Translations under genes and position numbers: made by a program
Assembly: GCA_037447605.1 (NCBI GenBank)
Contig: CM074808.1
Span: 186,001-250,000, forward strand
Direction of reading: 5' to 3'
DNA from: Zygnema circumcarinatum SAG 698-1b
Lineage: Eukaryota; Plantae; Zygnematophyceae
DNA length: 64,000 bases
The notes under the pieces: generated by a model
The model's database searches: none
Told to the model about the DNA's origin: nothing
Seen by the model: the letters and a program-made list of their open reading frames with translations, nothing else
Part shown: in pieces, positions 41,821-50,817 of the stretch
Layout: every line of letters starts with the position of its first letter
Position numbering within the stretch: the stretch's first letter is position 1

Positions 41821-42725
41821 TCAGTAACTCCCCCCTCTCCCTCCCTCCTTCACTCCCACCCCCCCCCCTCCCGCGAGCTGCATCCCCCCATCCTCGTCTC
41901 CCACAGCGGCCTCCCACTTCCCCTCCAGCTGCCCGTTCATCTCCCCCCCCTCGTCCTGCGCCCCCATGTTCCCATCCTCGAGGTGGATCTGCTCCCCCAG
42001 GGAGCCCTCGTCCATAGGGCCCCCCAGCACTAAGTGTTCGACATAGTCATGCAAAACCTGGTCGTAAAGCTTCTTCAGCCTCTCCAAGGCTCGCTCTCTC
42101 TCCTTCTCGGAGGAGTTGTCGAGAGTGAAGTTGTCGTGGATGAAGCGCTGGAAACCTCCCGCCATCTCAAACTGGAGGGGGAAACCACGAAAAAAAAAAC
42201 GAATTGGAAATGAATGACGAGAATAAAATGCCGTCCCTAACATTATTCTAATTGGGCACGCTTGCCGCAGCCTCTATCACCCTCTCCTCATTTCCCTTGT
42301 CGCTCTCTCTGTGTCTCTCACCCCACCTCCCTCCCTCTCTCTCTTGTTTTATCTCTTGCAATCTGCCTCTCCCTCTTCCCTTTCTCTCGCTCCCTCCTCT
42401 CCTCCCACTCCCTTTCTCCATCCCCCTCTCCTCCTCCCTCCCCCTTTCTCCTCCCTCCCCAATCTCTTCATCTCTCCCCCTCCCCCTCCCTCTCCCCCTC
42501 GATGTTCCTTTCCTACTAGCTCTCTCACCTGCTGCCTCCCTCCTGCCTCGGCGGCGTAGCGGCACAGTAGAGGCAGATCCACCTTATGACCGACCACTTG
42601 CGGCTTGCCAGTTGGCACGGGCTTGGAGTGATCCCTTAGGAAGTCATAGATCATCTTCAGACTGTACCGGTCGTGGATCACCACAAGGGCGCGGGATCCA
42701 CTCTCTGTACAACCGAGATCCAACC
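41821..42725 (-). CDS. ARID (AT-rich interaction)-like domain plus acidic tail, two exons; probably the 3' part of the upstream 2OG-oxygenase-like gene
   Basis: Exon ~42725-42529 (donor CAG|gtgaga) splices in phase 0 to exon 42171-41821 (acceptor ccctccag|). Product: LKMIYDFLRDHSKPVPTGKPQVVGHKVDLPLLCRYAAEAGGRQQ|FEMAGGFQRFIHDNF...ALERLKKLYDQVLHDYVEHL. This follows the ARID pattern F-x(8-10)-P-x-hydrophobic-G-x-x-hydrophobic-DL-x-x-L ... GG ... LK/R-x-x-Y-x-x-x-L-x-x-Y. Confidence 0.65.
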
Positions 42726-43079
42726 CTGGGCAGATCAACCGAGGAACACAGGATCCATGGTCGCAATGTCGAGGTATCAACTCGGATCGGATTGGAGGAC
42801 TCGATGAACTGAAAGGGAGGTGGTGAGTCGGAAAAGGGAGGGGGCGAGAGAGGAGAGTAGGGAGAAAGGAGAGCGAGGGAGAAAGGGAGAAAGGGGGAAA
42901 GGAAAGGGAGAGAAGGCGAAGGGGGAAAAGGGGGCAGGGAGGGAGGGGAGAAGAGAGGCACGAGAAGAAGAATCGGATGCGGAATAAAGTAGGTAAGGTG
43001 TGAAATAGCAGGAGGGAGAGGAATGCAAAGCGACCGAAGGCAGAAGGCTTGACCTAATATGAGCGTGTTTGTGTGTGTA

Positions 43080-43119
<40 letters not shown>

Positions 43120-43140
43120 GTTGGACACTTCATCTCCTAC

Positions 43141-46100
43141 CTCTCTTGGGCGTGGTTCCCACCTCAAAAGTAGGCATCTCCCCCCCCTGTCTCTCTGTCC
43201 AGCCCGGCTCATACGCCTCAAGGAATGACTGCTTCCCACAACCGCACATCGTCACGTCACGTTATGTTGCGAGCGACACATCACATCACGTCATCATCAT
43301 CGATTCTTTTAAAAAAAAAAAAAAAAAACAAACAAACAAACAAATTTGAACCTTACTGACAGCAAATGTAGAACGCAAACGGAACGGACGTGCGGAATCC
43401 AAAGCGAACAACGGCAACTGAGACTGAAACTGAAACGGAGCATAGAACGGCTTGCCTGCTTCCCCCGGTTCGGCAAGTCGTGGGGGTGCACAAAGGGCAC
43501 TTGCGGAGGCCACCCGAGCTGCGCCCTCAAATATCCGCAGGGGGGGTCCTCCATCTGCATGTGCTGCTCCTCGCAGTCCTGCAGAGAGCAGGAAGGGGAA
43601 GCGGTGCGGGAGGGTAAAGAAATTTTAGGGAGAGAGAAAAAGGAAGAGAAGAGAAGGAGAACAGCAACGTTTTTCTACGGACCTTTAAATTGCAGAAGCG
43701 AATTTTGAGCTGCTTCATTTCTGCCAGGTCCTGGACCTTCTCCTTGAGCACCCTTTGGGCCTCCAGACGGAGTCTCTTTGAAGGCGCGAGCCCCCTCTCT
43801 CCCAGTGAGTCCTTTGATTTCCGCTTTCGGATTTTCTCTAATGTCCCGGGCACTGCATCCAGATGGAAACATGTGGCATTTAGAGATGCAGTCCTTCTTC
43901 TCTCACTCCCTCCCCCCTTTACCCCTTTCTCCCTTGCCCGCAACTCCTCTCCTTCTCCCTCTCTTATCCAATCAAATTCCCAAGTGTCAAGTCTTCTCTC
44001 TCCCACACCTCCCACCCTCGACTAAACACTTACAAACCCTTACACCCCTAACATTACCGCGACAAACCCTAGCAATTCTAACCTAATCACCCCTTCATAT
44101 CAACCCAGCAAACCCTCAAACCCTTCCCAAACCCTCAACAAAACCTAACACACCCTCCCCCCCCCCTCCCCCCTCCCCTCCCCTCTCCCCTTCCTCACCT
44201 TGCTCACAACCTAACACACCCCTCCCCTCCCCTCCCCTCCCCCCTCCCCTCCACTCTCCCCTTCCTCACCTTGCTCACCTTGCTTAGGCCCCTTGGGTGG
44301 TGCCGCTATGATCTGGTCTAGCGGCACCGCCCTCTGCATGAAGCCCTGCACGGCTATGGGCGCCTGGAAGGGCGCCGCGATCTGATGCCCCGCCGCCGCC
44401 ATGGCCGAGCAGTGGATGATGGCGGACGCGCGCGCCATGAGCTTGAACACGAGCGAGCACCGCCCGCCGCCCAGCGCCCCCCCCGCGCCCACCAGCCCCG
44501 CCTGGGCCGCCGCCAGGTCCGTCTTGTACAGCGCGGGACCCACGTACCCGCCCGTGGCCTGCCAGGTAGGGAAGTTAGGGTTAGAGTTAGGGTTAAGGTT
44601 AGGGTTAGGGTTAGGGTTAGGGTTAGGGTTAGGGTTAGGGTTAGGGTTAGGGTTAGGGTTAGGGTTTGGGGGGGGCGGGGGGGACCTGGTAGAGGGAGAG
44701 GCCGGTGAGGACGACGACGTCCCCCGGCGCGAGGTCGCTGTCGAGCAGCACCCAGCGGTTCTGGGGGTCGCGCACGTACAGGCCCGGCCGGTCGCTCTTC
44801 ACGAGCGCGAGGAGGCCCTTCTCGGCGCGCGGCTCCGCGTCCTCGGGGAGAGGGGGGGCGTCCGGGCCCTGCTCGGAGAGGCCCATGCTGCAGCGAGAGG
44901 GAGGGAGAGGGAGGGAGAGGGAGGGAGTGTGAGGGAGTGTGAGGGGGAAAAGTGGTGAGGAGAGGTGGGGGGAGGGGAGGAGGGGGAGGAGGGGGAGGGG
45001 GGAGGGGGGAGGGGGGAGGGGGAGGGGGAGGGGGGAGGGGGAGGGGGAGGGGGAGGGGAGGGGGAGGGGGAGGGGAGGGGGGGAGGGGGAGGGGGAGGGG
45101 GGGAGGGGGAGGGGGAGGGGGAGGGGGAGGGAGGGGAGGGGGAGGGAGGGGAGGGGGGGAGGGGAGGGGAGGGGGAGGGGGAGGGGGGGAGGGGAGGGGA
45201 GGGGGAGGGGAGGGGGAGGGAGGGAGGGGAGGGGGGGAGGGGGAGGGAGGGAGGGAGGGAGGGGAGGGGGAGGAGGAGGAGGGGAGGGGAGGGAGGGAGG
45301 GGAGGGGGAGGGAGGGGAGGGGAGGGGGAGGGGGAGGGGAGGGGGAGGGGAGGGGAGGGGGAGGGGGAGGGAGGGGAGGGGGAGGGGAGGGGGAGGGAGG
45401 GGAGGGGGAGGGAGAGGGGGGGAGGGGAGGGGAGGGGGAGGGAGGGAGGGGAGGGGAGGGGGAGGGGGAGGGAGGGGAGGGGGAGGGGAGGGGGAGGGGG
45501 AGGGGAGGGAGGGGAGGGGAGGGGGAGGGAGGGAGGGAGGGGAGGGGAGGGGGAGGGAGGGGAGGGGAGGGGAGGGGAGGGGAGGGGGAGGGGAGGGGAG
45601 GGGGAGGGGGAGGGGGGGAGGGGGAGGGGGAGGGGGAGGGGGAGGGGAGGGGAGGGGGGGAGGGGGAAGGGGGAGGAGAGAGGGGGAAGGGGGGAGGCCG
45701 GAGGGGGGAAAACGAACGAGAGAGAGACAAAGTGAAAAAAAGACGGAGTGGGAAAAAGATTGACAGACGGAGGGAGGGATTTTTAGGCTGCTTAAGAGGG
45801 CTGCCTGAGGGGAGTACCTCCGTCCATGGCAGCACGTCGAAAGCACCGACGATGCCACCTCGTTGTTCTTCAAAGGAATATTGTCCAAAAGGTCTGTGAA
45901 CGCGTACGACCGTAGGTCTAAGGAGCGCGCCACAGCTTCCAGAACGATCCTGGAAGTGTTGCCCAAGCAGGAAAACACTTCTGCCAGAACCGCAGAGAGG
46001 GAGAGAGAGAGAGGGAGGAACAGAGAGAGAGAGAGAGAGCACATGTTAGGATTGGAGTTCAAGAAACGCTCAGGTTGTTCGCAGAACTTAATGTTTGTAG

Positions 46101-48334
46101 GAACGTTAAAGATGTGCAGGCATCGACAAAGTAGTGCAGGAAAAAAGGTAGAAGAACGCGTAGAAAAAATTCAAAAAAAATAAGTGGAGCACTAGTGGGA
46201 GGCTAAATTGTACGGAAAAATGAAGAAAAAAAAGAAAAGGTACAAGGAAATCAGGTAGGCTTTTAGGTAACGAGACGACAGATTTTTTTTTTTAGGGTTT
46301 GCAGCACCTGGCAGGCAGGAGGGCGCGAGCGTGTCCCCGTCGTCGGGCGCGGGCAGTCTGCCCGGACGGAAGTCAAAGGTCTCCTTCCCAAAATGCGGCT
46401 CCGCAAAATATCCGCACGTGCGGTTCCACTCGCCGGTTTCCTCCATGCCTGGCAGGCACTGCAGGTCGGGCCCCGCCCGCCGCTTGTGCTGCAAACCATG
46501 CACAAAAAGGATACGTATGTGTACATGGATGAGGAGGATACGATAAATAGAGTAGTGAGGGATACGCAAAAAATAAAGGGGTCCATAGTGTCAGGGCAAG
46601 CACATAAGGTGAGTTTTGGGCTTGAAATGCGTTTGATCATGCAAATACGGTGAGGCAAAATGGTGATGTGATGTGATGTGATGTGATGTGATGTGATGTG
46701 ATGATGTGATGTGATGTGATGTGATGTGATGTGATGTGATGTGATGTGATATGATGTAGTATGTATCATGAGAGGCTGAGATGATATACTATGACAACGT
46801 GATGATGCAGCGACATGGAGATGTAGTGAATGGTGATGAAGTGTTTCCGATGACCCCCCAAGAAGCAGCAGTTGGTGGAAAAAGCCTTTCTTCGTTCCGG
46901 ACATATTCTATGTTCTATGTAGTAACGTCGAACTTGCTTTCAGTTAGACTGCGCAGGCAGAGAGAGGGGGCAGAGCGCACCTGAAAGTAAACCCTGCACG
47001 AATCGAGGGCGTATTTCATAAGAAGGTCGTCTCCCAGCGGCAGTTGAATTATAGCTGCTCGCGCCAACAGCCCCACCACAACAAATGTTTTTTTTTAAAT
47101 AACATTCAATAATGAATAAAAACAGAAAGTAAACAAAGTTGGTTTGGGGAGGGGGGAACTCAGACAATTGAATTTTTTTTCCTAAGTGTGCAAACTTTAT
47201 TGGTTCGAACTCCAAGTTTGCAATCTGTCGGAGTGATTTGGGGGATGCGGTTTTTTGTCGATTGAGGGAGATGTGCATAGCGGAAGGGACGGGAAAGGAG
47301 GAGAGGGAGAGGGGATTGGGAGACACAGAGTTGAGTGAGAGTGAGAGAGAGTGAGAGAGAGAGAGAGGGGGTGGAGAGAGAGAAAGGGGAGAGTATCGCA
47401 CACAAGCGACAGCTCTCCTCCGGGCTCTGAAACCCATCCAACCTACAGACACAAATTTCCGACCTTTTTCTCTCAGTCTCTCCCTATCTCCCTCCCTCTC
47501 CCTCTCCTTTTCTCACCTCCTCCCTCTCTCCCTCTCTCTCCCTCCCCCTTTCCCTCTCCCTCTCCCTCCCCCTCCTCTCCCTCTCCCTCCTCTCCCTCTC
47601 TCTCCCCCTCTCTCCACCTCTCCCTCTCCCTCTCCCTCTCCCTCTCCCTCCTCTCCCTCTCTCTCCCCCTCTCTCCCCCTCCCCCTCTCCCTCACCCTCA
47701 TCCACTCCCGCTCCCTCTCTCCCCCCCTCCCTCACCCTCACTCTCACCCGCTCCCTCCCCATTTCTCTCTCCCACTCCCTCTCTCACTGTCACTCTCCTC
47801 ACTCGCTCACTCTCTCTCCCTCTCCCCCTTTCCGTCTCCCGCTCCTCAGGCCTTCCATATCATTAACCTCCTCAACCTGGTTCACTCTATCTACCCTATA
47901 TACTTGCATTTCTATTTTAAAATAGAAAAGAGACCAGTAGAAATAGTAACAGTAGTAGAAACAACACCAGCGTCTGAAACTGTCAAGCTTTTTATGTTCA
48001 CTTTAACTTTAACAGAGTTTAAAGAGCTACAACAGTGCTTATACGTGTGTTTAACAGCACTTCATCAACTTCAAAAGTGTTTAAAACCAGTGTTCAGTAA
48101 TCTTATCACTGCGTTTATCAGTGTTCAGTAGCGTTCAACGGTGCGCTGAACGGCGCATGGACCCGGGCGCGTACCGGCGTTGAAGCGCGCGAGCGAGGCC
48201 CAGAGCGCGTTGACCGCCCCCTTGTACGCGTCCGCGGGGAAGCCGTCGCGCGGGGCCAAGTCCGCCAGCCGGATGCGCCCCGGCCCGCCCCCGCCAGCCC
48301 CGCCCCCCGGGGAAAACAGGTACCCCGACGCCAT
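43141..48334 (-). CDS. Uncharacterised plant 2OG-Fe(II) oxygenase-like protein (Arabidopsis At3g12940-like, from memory) with a conserved C-terminal KRLRL/Cys-His domain
   Basis: Exons 48334-48175, 47054-46981, 46488-46308, 45980-45818, 44887-44686, 44558-44279, 43852-43683, 43578-43456 (GC donor), 43228-43163 or -43141. Motifs: GRIRLADLAP, AIIQLP, LDLRSYAFTDLLDNIPL, LVKSDRPGLYVRD..WV, RCSLVFKLM, PSKRLRLEAQRVLKEKVQ, LGWPPQVPFVHPHDLPN, FLEAYEPGW. The terminal exon is ambiguous (see findings). Confidence 0.85.
44575..44667 (+). repeat. Near-perfect (TTAGGG)n array making up most of a ~125-nt intron of the 2OG-like gene
   Basis: About 15 units between exon ends 44686 and 44558. Confidence 0.95.
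44895..45705 (+). repeat. ~800-nt G/A-only, very G-rich tract (GGGGA/GGGAG) in a 2OG-like gene intron
   Basis: Almost no C or T between ~44960 and 45690. Confidence 0.95.
46663..46755 (+). repeat. (GTGAT)n pentanucleotide microsatellite
   Basis: gtgatgtgatgtgat... Confidence 0.95.
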
Positions 48335-48452
48335 CTATCCCTCTATGGCCCGCTACCTCTATCTCTCTCTCTCCCTCTCTCCCTCTCCCTCTCTCTCTCT
48401 CTCACTCTCTCTCTCTCTCTCACACTCTTCCTCTCGCCCTACTCGTCAATCT

Positions 48453-48503
<51 letters not shown>

Positions 48504-50817
48504 CTTCCTGTCTTCACACCTCACTCAGTCGGTCGGCCTCTACTTCCCATTACTTCTCACCACAGGGCCTGGCACTCCACCTCGGCCTCTATGCTACCAT
48601 CTTCGCTAGTGGTAGCTCGCTTTGTCTATCTCTCTCTCATACATGGTCTCCCTCGCCCTCTCCCTCTCGCTCCCTTCCTCTCCCTCTCCCTTTCCCTCTC
48701 CCTCCCTCTCGGAAGCTCTCTACTTCGTTGCTGGATGGCTCCTATCTATTGAAAACTCTGTTCCTCTCCCACTCTCCACCTCTCTTTTCACTTTCCCTAC
48801 CGCTCTCTATCTCTCTATATCTCCCTCTCCCTCTCCCTCTCTCTCCCTCTCTTTCTCCTTCGCTCCCGCTCTCTCCCCCTCTCTCTCCCTCTCTACTCCC
48901 TCGCTCTTCCTCACCCTCCCTCTCCCTCTCTCTCCCTTTCTCTCCCCCTCTTTCTCTCGCCCTCCGACTCCCTCACTCTCCCTCTCCCTCTCACTCCCCC
49001 TCTCTCCCCCTCTCACTCTCTCACTCCCTCTCCCTCACCCTCTCCCTCACGCTCTCCCTTACCCTCTCCCTCCCTCTCCCTCCCTCTCTCTCCCTCCCTT
49101 TCCCTCTCCCTCACTCTCCCTCTCCCTCTCTCCCTCTCTCTCTCCCTTTCCCCCCCTCTCTCCCGCCTAATCTTTTTCAAAATTTCGTACCCCTCCCCGC
49201 GCCCTCCCGTTCTTTTCCCCTTCCCGAGGGGTCCTAAGCTCCCCCCGTGACGCCTGTCACGCCCGCCGCCATGGTTTCGTTCCCTGCCCGCCCCCTCCCT
49301 GCCCGCTCGCCTCTCCAAAACCTTTCCCCTCCGTCCCCTTCAAAACCCTAAAATTTCCGGCCCACCCCTCGCCCTCCCAGGGCGCTATACCTCATTTGTA
49401 CCCGAACCGAAGAAAACTTTCAAATTTCGCTCAAAATTGTGGTCCAGTTCCGGCCCGAGATCTCCTCCACGCATTGTGATTGGCGGGGATTTTATTCAGC
49501 GAATGGGAGGGCATCACGTGGCAGATTTTTGGGCGGCAGAGGATGTGGTCAGGAGGGAAAAGCGGAATGTTTCGAACTAATTTGGGGGCAAAAAATTGAA
49601 ATTTGAATTTTGGGAATTTTGGTGTCAGAGAGACGGGCCGGATGGGCGGGTTTTTGCGCGGTCGTAATTTTTCAATTTCGGAATCTCAAAGTTTTTCTGC
49701 TATTTATTTTTCGAGTTTTTGGGAAAAAATCGATCGATTGTTTCAGGAATTTTGCGCGGATTAGCAGAAGTTTTGGACCAATGAGGATTTGCCTCGTGTA
49801 TCTTTGACAGATTTGTTCATAGAGATAACGTTACTGTTAGACTGTAACTGTGACAGCAGAACGTAGGGTCAAGAGTGCATGTACGGTATTCTGTCGTATT
49901 GTGGGGTGTTTGTCGTGACTTGTGTACGTTTCTGTACGGTAATTAATTCCGTACTGGTTTGACCTTATTTGTACGGTCGGCCCTAGAGTCGGTTCTCATT
50001 TTTGAGGATGTCCGTCCGCCAAGAGCTCCCATGAACCATGTTCTCGGCAACATTGGCCGGCGTATGTTGGAGCAACAACAACAAGAGGCATCTTGCATTC
50101 TTGGCGAACAACGATTCTATGTTGGCCTACAAAAAATCCGTCAAACGGTGTAGCATATAACTGCAGGAATGCACCCTCTGACATCCACTCGCTGCAAAAA
50201 CAAGAACTGAACACAAACAAATTCACATCATTCATTCATTCATCTCTTCAAACAAACAATTGTACATGTGACTGCCGTCGTCACGTCACGTCTGCGAACC
50301 ATCTCTCCAAATGCTCTAAGCATGCGCCTAACACGCCTCCACACACTAGGTTGTTCAACAACCCTTCGACTAGAACAACACAGCATGAAATAAGACAAAG
50401 TCTGGCTTTACAAGAATAGTTCTTCGACATGAATGCAACAAATTTTCCTAGACAACGAGCCCGATGAGTCCCGATTGTGGACATTTACACTAACACATCT
50501 ACAAGACTACTCATGCAAGTTTGGTCAACAACAACACCTACAAAGCCATAATCTTAACCTCCTCCAATTCCTCCCCCCCTTCCCTTCATCTTCCTTCGAT
50601 GCTCCACCATTTCCTCCTCAAATCGAATCCATTCCATGGCCTTAGGGTATTAAGGGTTTAGGGCTCACATTTCCTCCTCCATCTCCTCCATACACATAAC
50701 TTGGCCCATTCACAAACGCCGCCTTTGAAGCAGTGAGGCCGTTCACTGCTACAGAGCACTGATTTAGGGTTTCCATGCCATCCAAAGACGTTTCCATGGG
50801 GTTTAGGGTTTAGGGCG

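Follow-up and report, generated by a model that had tools for sequence, protein, structure and literature searches.

We identified an 11-exon gene on the minus strand (48334..41821) of a 64,000-nucleotide (nt) stretch of the genome of the zygnematophyte alga Zygnema circumcarinatum SAG 698-1b (GenBank assembly GCA_037447605.1, contig CM074808.1, positions 186,001 to 250,000), hereafter the window, whose own numbering is used throughout. The gene encodes about 655 amino acids (aa) and is very probably the algal orthologue of a streptophyte-wide, uncharacterised family in which an oxygenase fold, a linker, a Cys-His module, an ARID domain and a tail follow one another in one chain. Comparison with homologous sequences confirmed that the terminal ARID exons and the oxygenase-like exons form one gene, and we regard the gene model as settled. 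The oxygenase-like domain is probably a pseudo-oxygenase, or at least non-canonical, as judged from the residues at its predicted metal site.

Gene structure

Direct reading of the sequence and tblastn with the homologue P0001 resolved the minus strand from 48334 to 41821 into 11 collinear exons (Table 1). P0001 is a 669-aa protein from a public run assembly with contigs of at most 3,092 nt, and was the single protein found by a word search with exon 5 (residues 392–459 of open reading frame (ORF) window:44662-46062:-); the searches reported here used either single window exons or homologous proteins and loci as proxies (P0001, moss transcripts). With P0001 as tblastn query, 11 of 11 exons were recovered in order with identities of 61–86% per exon and E values of 1e-9 to 1e-68. 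The exon lengths total 1,968 nt, equal to 655 codons plus stop, the phases agree at all junctions by coordinate arithmetic, and the introns read as canonical GT-AG throughout, save one GC-AG. P0001 itself runs unbroken from its N-terminus via FLEAFEPGW, TTPKR and EGGSRTLVV to the ARID and an acidic tail, and shares the stop position with the last exon of the window gene. Collinearity of 11 exons with a single 669-aa ORF is more than chance would produce and, because P0001 aligns in order with all exons on the window, the window gene is its orthologue, ARID exons included. As the window gene has 10 introns and the P0001 ORF is uninterrupted over 2 kb, P0001 is most likely derived from mRNA.

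A scan of metagenome and metatranscriptome contigs of the JGI recovered five intron-free, moss-like (Sphagnum-type) contigs (L001–L005), each with one ORF of 588–646 aa that spans P0001 residues 5–597 and is bounded by stops on both sides. Moss genomic contigs (L022, L023, L028–L032) carry the intron within the ARID at the same residue as the window gene (P0001 residue 543, ..GGRxQ|F..), and this common position implies that the intron is old. An earlier reading of the window from its letters alone (the preliminary description) had proposed that the ARID exons are joined to the 2OG-like (2-oxoglutarate oxygenase-like) exons in one protein; the collinearity with the P0001 ORF and the moss transcripts bear this out.

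The junctions named in the preliminary description fared differently. The phase-1 donor at 43141 (AGA G|gtagga), after the FLEAYEPGW exon, was found in the sequence as described, and the phase-0 junction from 42529 to 42171 is exact (cag|gtgaga ... ctccag|TTT). An in-frame acceptor (cccag|GG) is indeed present at the proposed position, 42725, but homology favours an acceptor at 42705: ..TTPKR-E-GGSRTLVV.. of P0001 matches ..TTPKR-E-SGSRALVV.. of the window only via tgtacag|AG at 42706/42705, and on the basis of this junction sequence 42704 was taken as the first base of exon 10. The favoured acceptor sits 21 nt downstream of 42725 in the same frame; use of 42725 would add seven codons, and the extra residues have no counterpart in any aligned homologue. 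The GC-AG intron is intron 8 (donor CAG|gcaagc, window 43454-43455), whose boundary was set by homology (..NRGKQ|SFLEAY..) and at which no fitting GT donor is present.

Table 1. Window coordinates of the exons, and of the intron before the ARID exons, in the Zygnema circumcarinatum gene
Feature	Window position	Strand	Content and evidence
Exon 1	48175..48334	-	ATG at 48334; oxygenase-like domain begins; donor g|gtacgc, phase 1; P0001 residues 1-49, tblastn E 6e-14
Exon 2 (AIIQLPLGDDLLMKYALDSCRVYFQ)	46981..47054	-	P0001 residues 49-74 (tblastn); splice sites gcag|CT, CAG|gtgcgc
Exon 3	46308..46488	-	P0001 residues 74-136, 76% identity, tblastn E 1e-29
Exon 4	45818..45980	-	P0001 residues 133-190, 79% identity (tblastn); sole canonical donor AG|gtactc at 45818/45817
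Exon 5	44686..44887	-	Beta-helix core; degenerate metal motif P-R-A-E-K-G in place of H-x-D; 79% identity (tblastn)
Exon 6	44279..44558	-	PALYKTD (Tyr at place of distal His); R-C-S (2OG-binding RxS); oxygenase-like domain ends; tblastn
Exon 7	43683..43852	-	Basic linker RKRKSK, KRLRL (similar to a nuclear localisation signal) and long conserved helix; 86% identity (tblastn)
Exon 8	43456..43578	-	Cys-His module C-x4-C-x3-H-x7-C and VPFVHPHDLPN; 83% identity (tblastn); GC-AG donor CAG|gcaagc
Exon 9	43141..43228	-	SFLEAYEPGW...TTPKR; phase-1 donor at 43141; 84% identity (tblastn); seed-plant proteins end roughly here
Intron 9	42705..43140	-	436 nt, C/T-rich; alternative acceptors 42725 and ~42809; in-frame stop 43132-43130
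Exon 10	42529..42704	-	ARID, first half (LKMIYDFLRDH..PQVVGHKVDLPLL..EAGGRQQ); acceptor ag|AG at 42706/42705; 77% identity (tblastn)
Exon 11, first part	42019..42171 (lower coordinate approximate)	-	ARID, second half (FEMAGGFQRF..LKKLYDQVLHDYVEH); tblastn
Exon 11, remainder	41821..42018	-	Acidic Gly/Glu/Asp-rich disordered tail; stop TGA 41823-41821; tail of P0001 model with confidence (pLDDT) ~33

ARID domain

The C-terminal domain is confirmed by its modelled fold as a divergent ARID with six helices. In an AlphaFold model of P0001, built from an 82-sequence alignment, the mean predicted local distance difference test score (pLDDT) is 78 and exceeds 90 in the ARID region; model residues 491–594 superpose on the ARIDs of BAF250b (2cxy_A, Z 9.9, root-mean-square deviation (rmsd) 3.2, 96 residues) and KDM5A (5ceh_A, Z 9.3, chain residues 84–177). 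A model of the ARID alone, made from a segment of moss transcript L001 (pLDDT 90.3), gave ten best matches among 48,161 chains that are all ARIDs (VIA), with Z from 10.2 to 4.6; the best is again 2cxy_A (Z 10.2, rmsd 2.5, 95 residues, VIA), and the first unrelated fold follows at Z 4.3. A generic helical bundle was rejected on this clear gap in Z between the ARID matches and all other folds. With the same model as Foldseek query, ARIDs take ten of the eleven best rows (probability 0.66–1.0, template modelling (TM) score ~0.5–0.65, rmsd 2.3–6.5), at E values of only 0.065–1.

Sequence profiles agree with the fold in part of the family. The Pfam profile ARID/BRIGHT (PF01388) matched 12 of the 21 members of alignment A1 (best E 8.6e-6), and three liverwort orthologues bear PF01388 in precomputed annotation. 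The claim of an ARID-like domain in the preliminary description was upheld by the structural matches together with hidden Markov model (HMM) scores close to the threshold. A language-model search with P0001 residues 488–600 returned ARID clusters as its ten best family-bearing matches (score 0.89, a lead and not proof). Exon 11 alone had no Pfam match, and sequence searches of the PDB with P0001, the family profile or single ARID exons found no ARID above noise; their best ARID row, obtained with the moss ARID as query, is ARID4A (E 0.075). A word search with the ARID region alone recovered the ARID type within its own family only. The isoelectric point of the ARID is 5.5–8 in most members and 9.3 in one partial row. 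In the window gene, the first half of the domain contains nine Lys and Arg versus five Asp and Glu and the second half seven versus 13, the acidic half being the one that normally bears the helix-turn-helix.

Oxygenase-like domain and its predicted metal site

The N-terminal ~345 residues of the P0001 model form a double-stranded beta-helix of the DOXC/IPNS type with an N-terminal helical region. The model matches thymine-7-hydroxylase (T7H, 5c3p_A) at Z 25.5 (rmsd 3.2, 284 residues, model residues 9–343) and over 20 enzymes of the DOXC/IPNS type at Z 20–25. The T7H match and a Foldseek E value of 2.5e-13 substantiate the 2OG-oxygenase fold that had been assigned to this part of the protein. 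At the sequence level, the sole PDB match of the family profile is an iron/ascorbate oxidoreductase (3on7, E 3.7e-5), over the beta-helix core, and the Pfam profile 2OG-FeII_Oxy (PF03171) matched one of 21 family members (E 0.0032).

Two independent HMM alignments, with 3on7 and with an ethylene-forming enzyme (9ovh), place H-x-D over R211-A-E213 and the distal His over Y269 of P0001, and the window gene has the same residues (R-A-E...Y) at these positions. The canonical iron triad H-x-D/E...H is absent from both proteins; the R-x-S that anchors the C5-carboxylate of 2OG is present in both as R-C-S. Among 82 family members, the first His position is occupied by Q (n = 52), H (n = 11), D (n = 9) or R (n = 4), the acidic position by D (n = 65) or E (n = 16), and the distal His position by H (n = 54), Y (n = 14) or L (n = 6), and the anchor retains its Arg in 80 and a Ser in 74 (Thr in six). 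H-x-E...H was read in liverwort members only. Because two of the three iron ligands are lost and the 2OG anchor is kept, we read the domain of the window gene as a putative pseudo-oxygenase.

Linker and Cys-His module

The best-conserved stretch of the family is neither the beta-helix nor the ARID, but lies between them in P0001 residues 377–470 (window exons 7–9). Its invariant features are KRLRLEAQRVLK, C411-x4-C416-x3-H420-x7-C428, VPFVHPHD and EPGW, and the family alignment has invariant columns at P381-V397 and at H445, H447 and D448. The module is modelled with pLDDT >93 and had neither a Pfam match nor a usable language-model lead; the spacing of its Cys and His residues makes a putative zinc site plausible. 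The KRLRL/Cys-His domain noted in the preliminary description is thereby real and the most conserved module of the family. The transcript-derived protein P0147 (769 aa) combines this module with an ARID (24.5 bits) and has no beta-helix domain.

Distribution and evolutionary history

A search of 1.84 billion cluster representatives yielded 349 relatives; Pfam assigns PUB62-63_C to the long, more remote proteins among them. Long, ARID-bearing forms were found by word search with P0001 (alignment A1) in Closterium, Mesotaenium, Spirogloea, Marchantia paleacea, Riccia, Calypogeia, Physcomitrium and Diphasiastrum; the first three answer positively the question whether other streptophyte algae have the same fusion. 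About 100 fern and seed-plant proteins of 450–500 aa end 10–25 residues past EPGW, at the position of window intron 9, and none of the ferns and seed plants sampled has the ARID fusion. ARID-less paralogues also occur in Physcomitrium (P0023) and Diphasiastrum (P0017).

A tree of the shared part only (34 rows, with P0009 and P0020 left out as broken or chimeric gene models) mirrors the species tree, with the algae grouped (support 99) and followed by liverworts, mosses and lycophytes. The fern and seed-plant clade (17 rows, support 97) is wholly ARID-less. The simplest reading of these sequences is that the fusion would predate the divergence between zygnematophyte-type algae and land plants, and that loss of the two terminal exons would have occurred at the base of the fern and seed-plant clade and on a few other occasions. 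Of the two origins offered in the preliminary description, lineage-specific or ancestral, the presence of the fusion in zygnematophytes, liverworts, mosses and a lycophyte favours the ancestral one. The statement that land-plant relatives lack an ARID holds for ferns and seed plants and fails for liverworts, mosses and the lycophyte, three liverwort proteins having PF01388.

The window protein joins a family that is known to databases and uncharacterised; public annotation already shows the fusion, in part with an automatically annotated ARID. No publication relevant to this architecture, to At3g12940, to ARID plus 2OG-oxygenase fusions or to PUB62/63 was found in a literature search of incomplete coverage.

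Comparison with known families

Long-form orthologues include R1flu_002260 (Riccia fluitans, named 'ARID domain-containing protein' in UniRef), Mapa_000444 (Marchantia paleacea), a protein of Calypogeia fissa, O6H91_12G057900 (Diphasiastrum), two Physcomitrium patens proteins of 604 and 624 aa, a protein of Closterium NIES-65, ME000457S07521 (Mesotaenium) and SM000075S21915 (Spirogloea), for none of which a function is described in the searchable literature. They have the module order of P0001 (beta-helix, basic linker, Cys-His, ARID) at 50–59% identity to it. The window gene carries the features of this orthogroup, namely KRLRLEAQRVLK, C-x4-C-x3-H-x7-C, VPFVHPHD, EPGW and the ARID motifs GKPQVVGHKVD / LKKLYDQVL, and shares the intra-ARID intron position with mosses. 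It differs from the other long forms, together with P0001, by an added long acidic tail and by R-x-E...Y in contrast to the H-x-E...H of liverworts.

Seed-plant and fern proteins of ~460–480 aa annotated as '2-oxoglutarate (2OG) and Fe(II)-dependent oxygenase superfamily protein' are orthologous over the first ~470 residues (44–49% identity, E ~1e-120) and keep KRLRLEAQRVLK, the Cys-His module and VPFVHPHD, but end shortly past EPGW without an ARID. This group presumably corresponds to the At3g12940-like proteins named in the preliminary description.

The likeness to KDM5/JARID1 and JARID2 lies in the combination of an ARID and a double-stranded beta-helix of the 2OG-oxygenase superfamily in one chain, and the family's ARID superposes on that of KDM5A at Z 9.3–9.5. 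KDM5 has its ARID inserted between JmjN and JmjC. In the window family, the ARID is C-terminal, the beta-helix is of the DOXC/IPNS type instead of a JmjC catalytic domain, there is no JmjN, PHD or C5HC2 zinc finger, and the iron ligands have been lost. The top 50 structural rows include no catalytic domain of a JmjC demethylase; KDM5A (5ceh_A, rank 50) aligns there through its ARID only (model residues 492–594), and the sole Pfam domain in P0001 is the ARID. Membership in KDM5/JARID was rejected on the lack of JmjC and JmjN. What remains of the term 'JARID-like' is a loose architectural parallel: the resemblance is convergent architecture and not membership, given the missing JmjC, JmjN and PHD domains, the C-terminal ARID and the replaced iron histidines. 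Since both of these histidines are replaced (R-x-E...Y), demethylase-like chemistry is unlikely.

The closest other family with this beta-helix domain is the N-terminal domain of the plant U-box proteins PUB62/PUB63 (profile E 1e-50 to 1e-63). The PUB62/63-type proteins examined (P0144, P0151, P0154, P0156, P0159) have a degenerate motif set like that of the window gene (x-x-E...Y-R...R-x-S), with both His lost and R-x-S kept; where the window family has the Cys-His module and ARID, they have U-box/RING-like and PUB62-63_C modules instead. From its sequence, the PUB62/63 N-terminal domain resembles a dead 2OG oxygenase, and because these proteins share E-x-E...Y-R...R-x-S the loss of the His residues appears to be old and shared. 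A 2OG-oxygenase-like fold also occurs in a chromatin or replication protein, yeast Cdt1, whose N-terminal domain (5me9, 5v8f) matches the P0001 model at Z 15.2–15.9. This domain of Cdt1 is catalytically inactive and would be a precedent for a dead oxygenase scaffold. Unlike the window protein, Cdt1 has no ARID and acts in another biological context, and there is no detectable sequence relation between the two.

Possible isoforms

Alternative splicing to ARID-less ends had been suggested from an acceptor at ~42809. This acceptor exists (tttcag|TTC) and would yield ..VHRVLQSDPS* with the phase-1 donor; the other proposed end, FIESS..EDDL*, is in another frame and needs a phase-0 donor. Plain retention of intron 9 would give a protein that ends in ..PKRGRR*. 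Evidence for isoforms comes only from moss transcripts that retain the intron within the ARID: two proteins derived from such transcripts, P0010 and P0012, end right after ..AGGRAQ, and their clusters have 55 and 77 member sequences, which indicates that the truncated moss form is common. The moss transcript pools contain both the fully spliced ARID form (L001, L004) and the intron-retaining form (P0010, P0012).

Alternative explanations

That a separate downstream gene holds the ARID exons, and that the fusion is an artefact of exons read together, is scarcely credible. The seeming fusion in the window was read from genomic DNA alone, which leaves room for such an error, but the exons are collinear with single ORFs of a related alga and of moss transcripts, the splice sites are canonical and phase-compatible, the intron between the two parts measures only 436 nt, and the identical architecture occurs in at least eight annotated genomes. 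An in-frame ATG upstream of the ARID is absent, the sole Met being inside helix 1 (LKMIYDF), and a separate ARID gene was rejected on the missing start codon and the collinearity. Another reading keeps the single gene and makes its main product ARID-less, through the 42809 acceptor or retention of intron 9 or 10, with the full fusion as a minor isoform. Strong conservation of the ARID from algae to lycophytes (57–65% identity), which implies selection on the full form, and the full-length fused products P0001 and L001–L005 make this unlikely, even though retention of intron 9 and use of the 42809 acceptor both lead to early in-frame stops (..PKRGRR*, ..VHRVLQSDPS*), moss P0010 and P0012 retain the intra-ARID intron, and moss and lycophyte possess ARID-less paralogues.

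The beta-helix domain could alternatively belong to an active 2OG/Fe(II) oxygenase that the ARID directs to chromatin, a functional analogue of KDM5/JARID on a DOXC-type domain. Such activity would fit a fold that resembles active DOXC/IPNS enzymes (Z 20–25), a nearly invariant 2OG-binding R-x-S, an acidic triad residue that is always D or E, and the H-x-E...H of liverworts, which is like that of JmjC enzymes; the invariant H-P-H-D of the middle module could in principle provide candidate ligands. We nevertheless consider it quite improbable, given R and Y at both His ligand positions of the window gene and P0001, Q at the first His position in 52 of 82 members, PUB62/63 relatives without both His, and the absence of JmjC, JmjN and PHD domains. 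PF03171, moreover, had no match in any window exon or in P0001 at E values up to 10.

The preferred reading, a fused, non-canonical oxygenase-like ARID protein linked to chromatin, also has points that weigh against it. We infer the splicing of the window gene from homology and canonical splice sites. Exon 10 alone scored 17.1 bits against Pfam ARID (E 0.0075, profile positions 6-50 of 89; ORF window:42352-42780:-), and P0001 reached 23.3 bits over profile positions 6-88 of 89, just below the PF01388 gathering score of 24.1 bits. The missing PF03171 match is another such point, and the triad assignment is based on alignments of ~15% identity, not on coordinates. The liverwort H-x-E...H could still bind iron, and inactivity may not be family-wide. 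The near-neutral charge of the ARID and its acidic second half weaken the prediction of DNA binding, which is not assured, and a nuclear location is suggested by basic motifs only.

Repeats in and around the gene

Several introns of the window gene contain repeats. Intron 5 holds ~16 telomere-type hexamers CCCTAA/TTAGGG (window 44574-44670, 94% matches). Most of intron 4 is an 800-nt low-complexity array (window 44895-45708), (GAGGG)n on the plus strand and (CCCTC)n on the gene strand, which keeps one frame open through exons 4 and 5 and so produces a mechanical ORF of 467 aa; its G-rich runs could form G-quadruplexes on the non-template strand. The start of intron 6 (window 44142-44278) is a 71-nt tandem duplication with 91% matches that begins at the donor of exon 6, where two copies of the donor motif caag|gtgag stand 9 nt apart; splicing from the downstream copy, which is also in phase, would lengthen the protein by three residues. 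The sequence immediately before the start codon (48340-48505) and intron 1 (47469-47845) contain long (GA)n/(CT)n and (CTCTCC)n arrays. GA-rich tracts at plant promoters are binding sites of GAGA-type factors.

Proposed function

We propose that the beta-helix domain would no longer be a canonical Fe(II)/2OG oxygenase and would more likely serve as a ligand- or partner-binding module, that the basic linker would bring the protein to the nucleus, and that the ARID would anchor it on chromatin, via DNA or a partner protein. In ferns and seed plants, the core would have been retained and the two terminal ARID exons shed. A further idea, highly speculative at present, is that the beta-helix domain senses 2OG or a related carboxylate and thereby controls the attached module, the ARID here and the U-box ubiquitin ligase in PUB62/63. 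If true, such metabolite-gated regulators would constitute a streptophyte-wide class, with loss of the chromatin arm in ferns and seed plants.

For work on 2OG oxygenases, this clade and the N-terminal domains of PUB62/63 should be flagged as likely non-catalytic. The family also offers a tractable chromatin candidate, in which comparison of the long form of Marchantia and Physcomitrium with the short form of Arabidopsis makes the contribution of the ARID testable. The gene of Z. circumcarinatum indicates that an unstudied, plant-wide family would have begun as an ARID-bearing and probably chromatin-linked one, and that the ARID would have been lost in the ancestor of ferns and seed plants.

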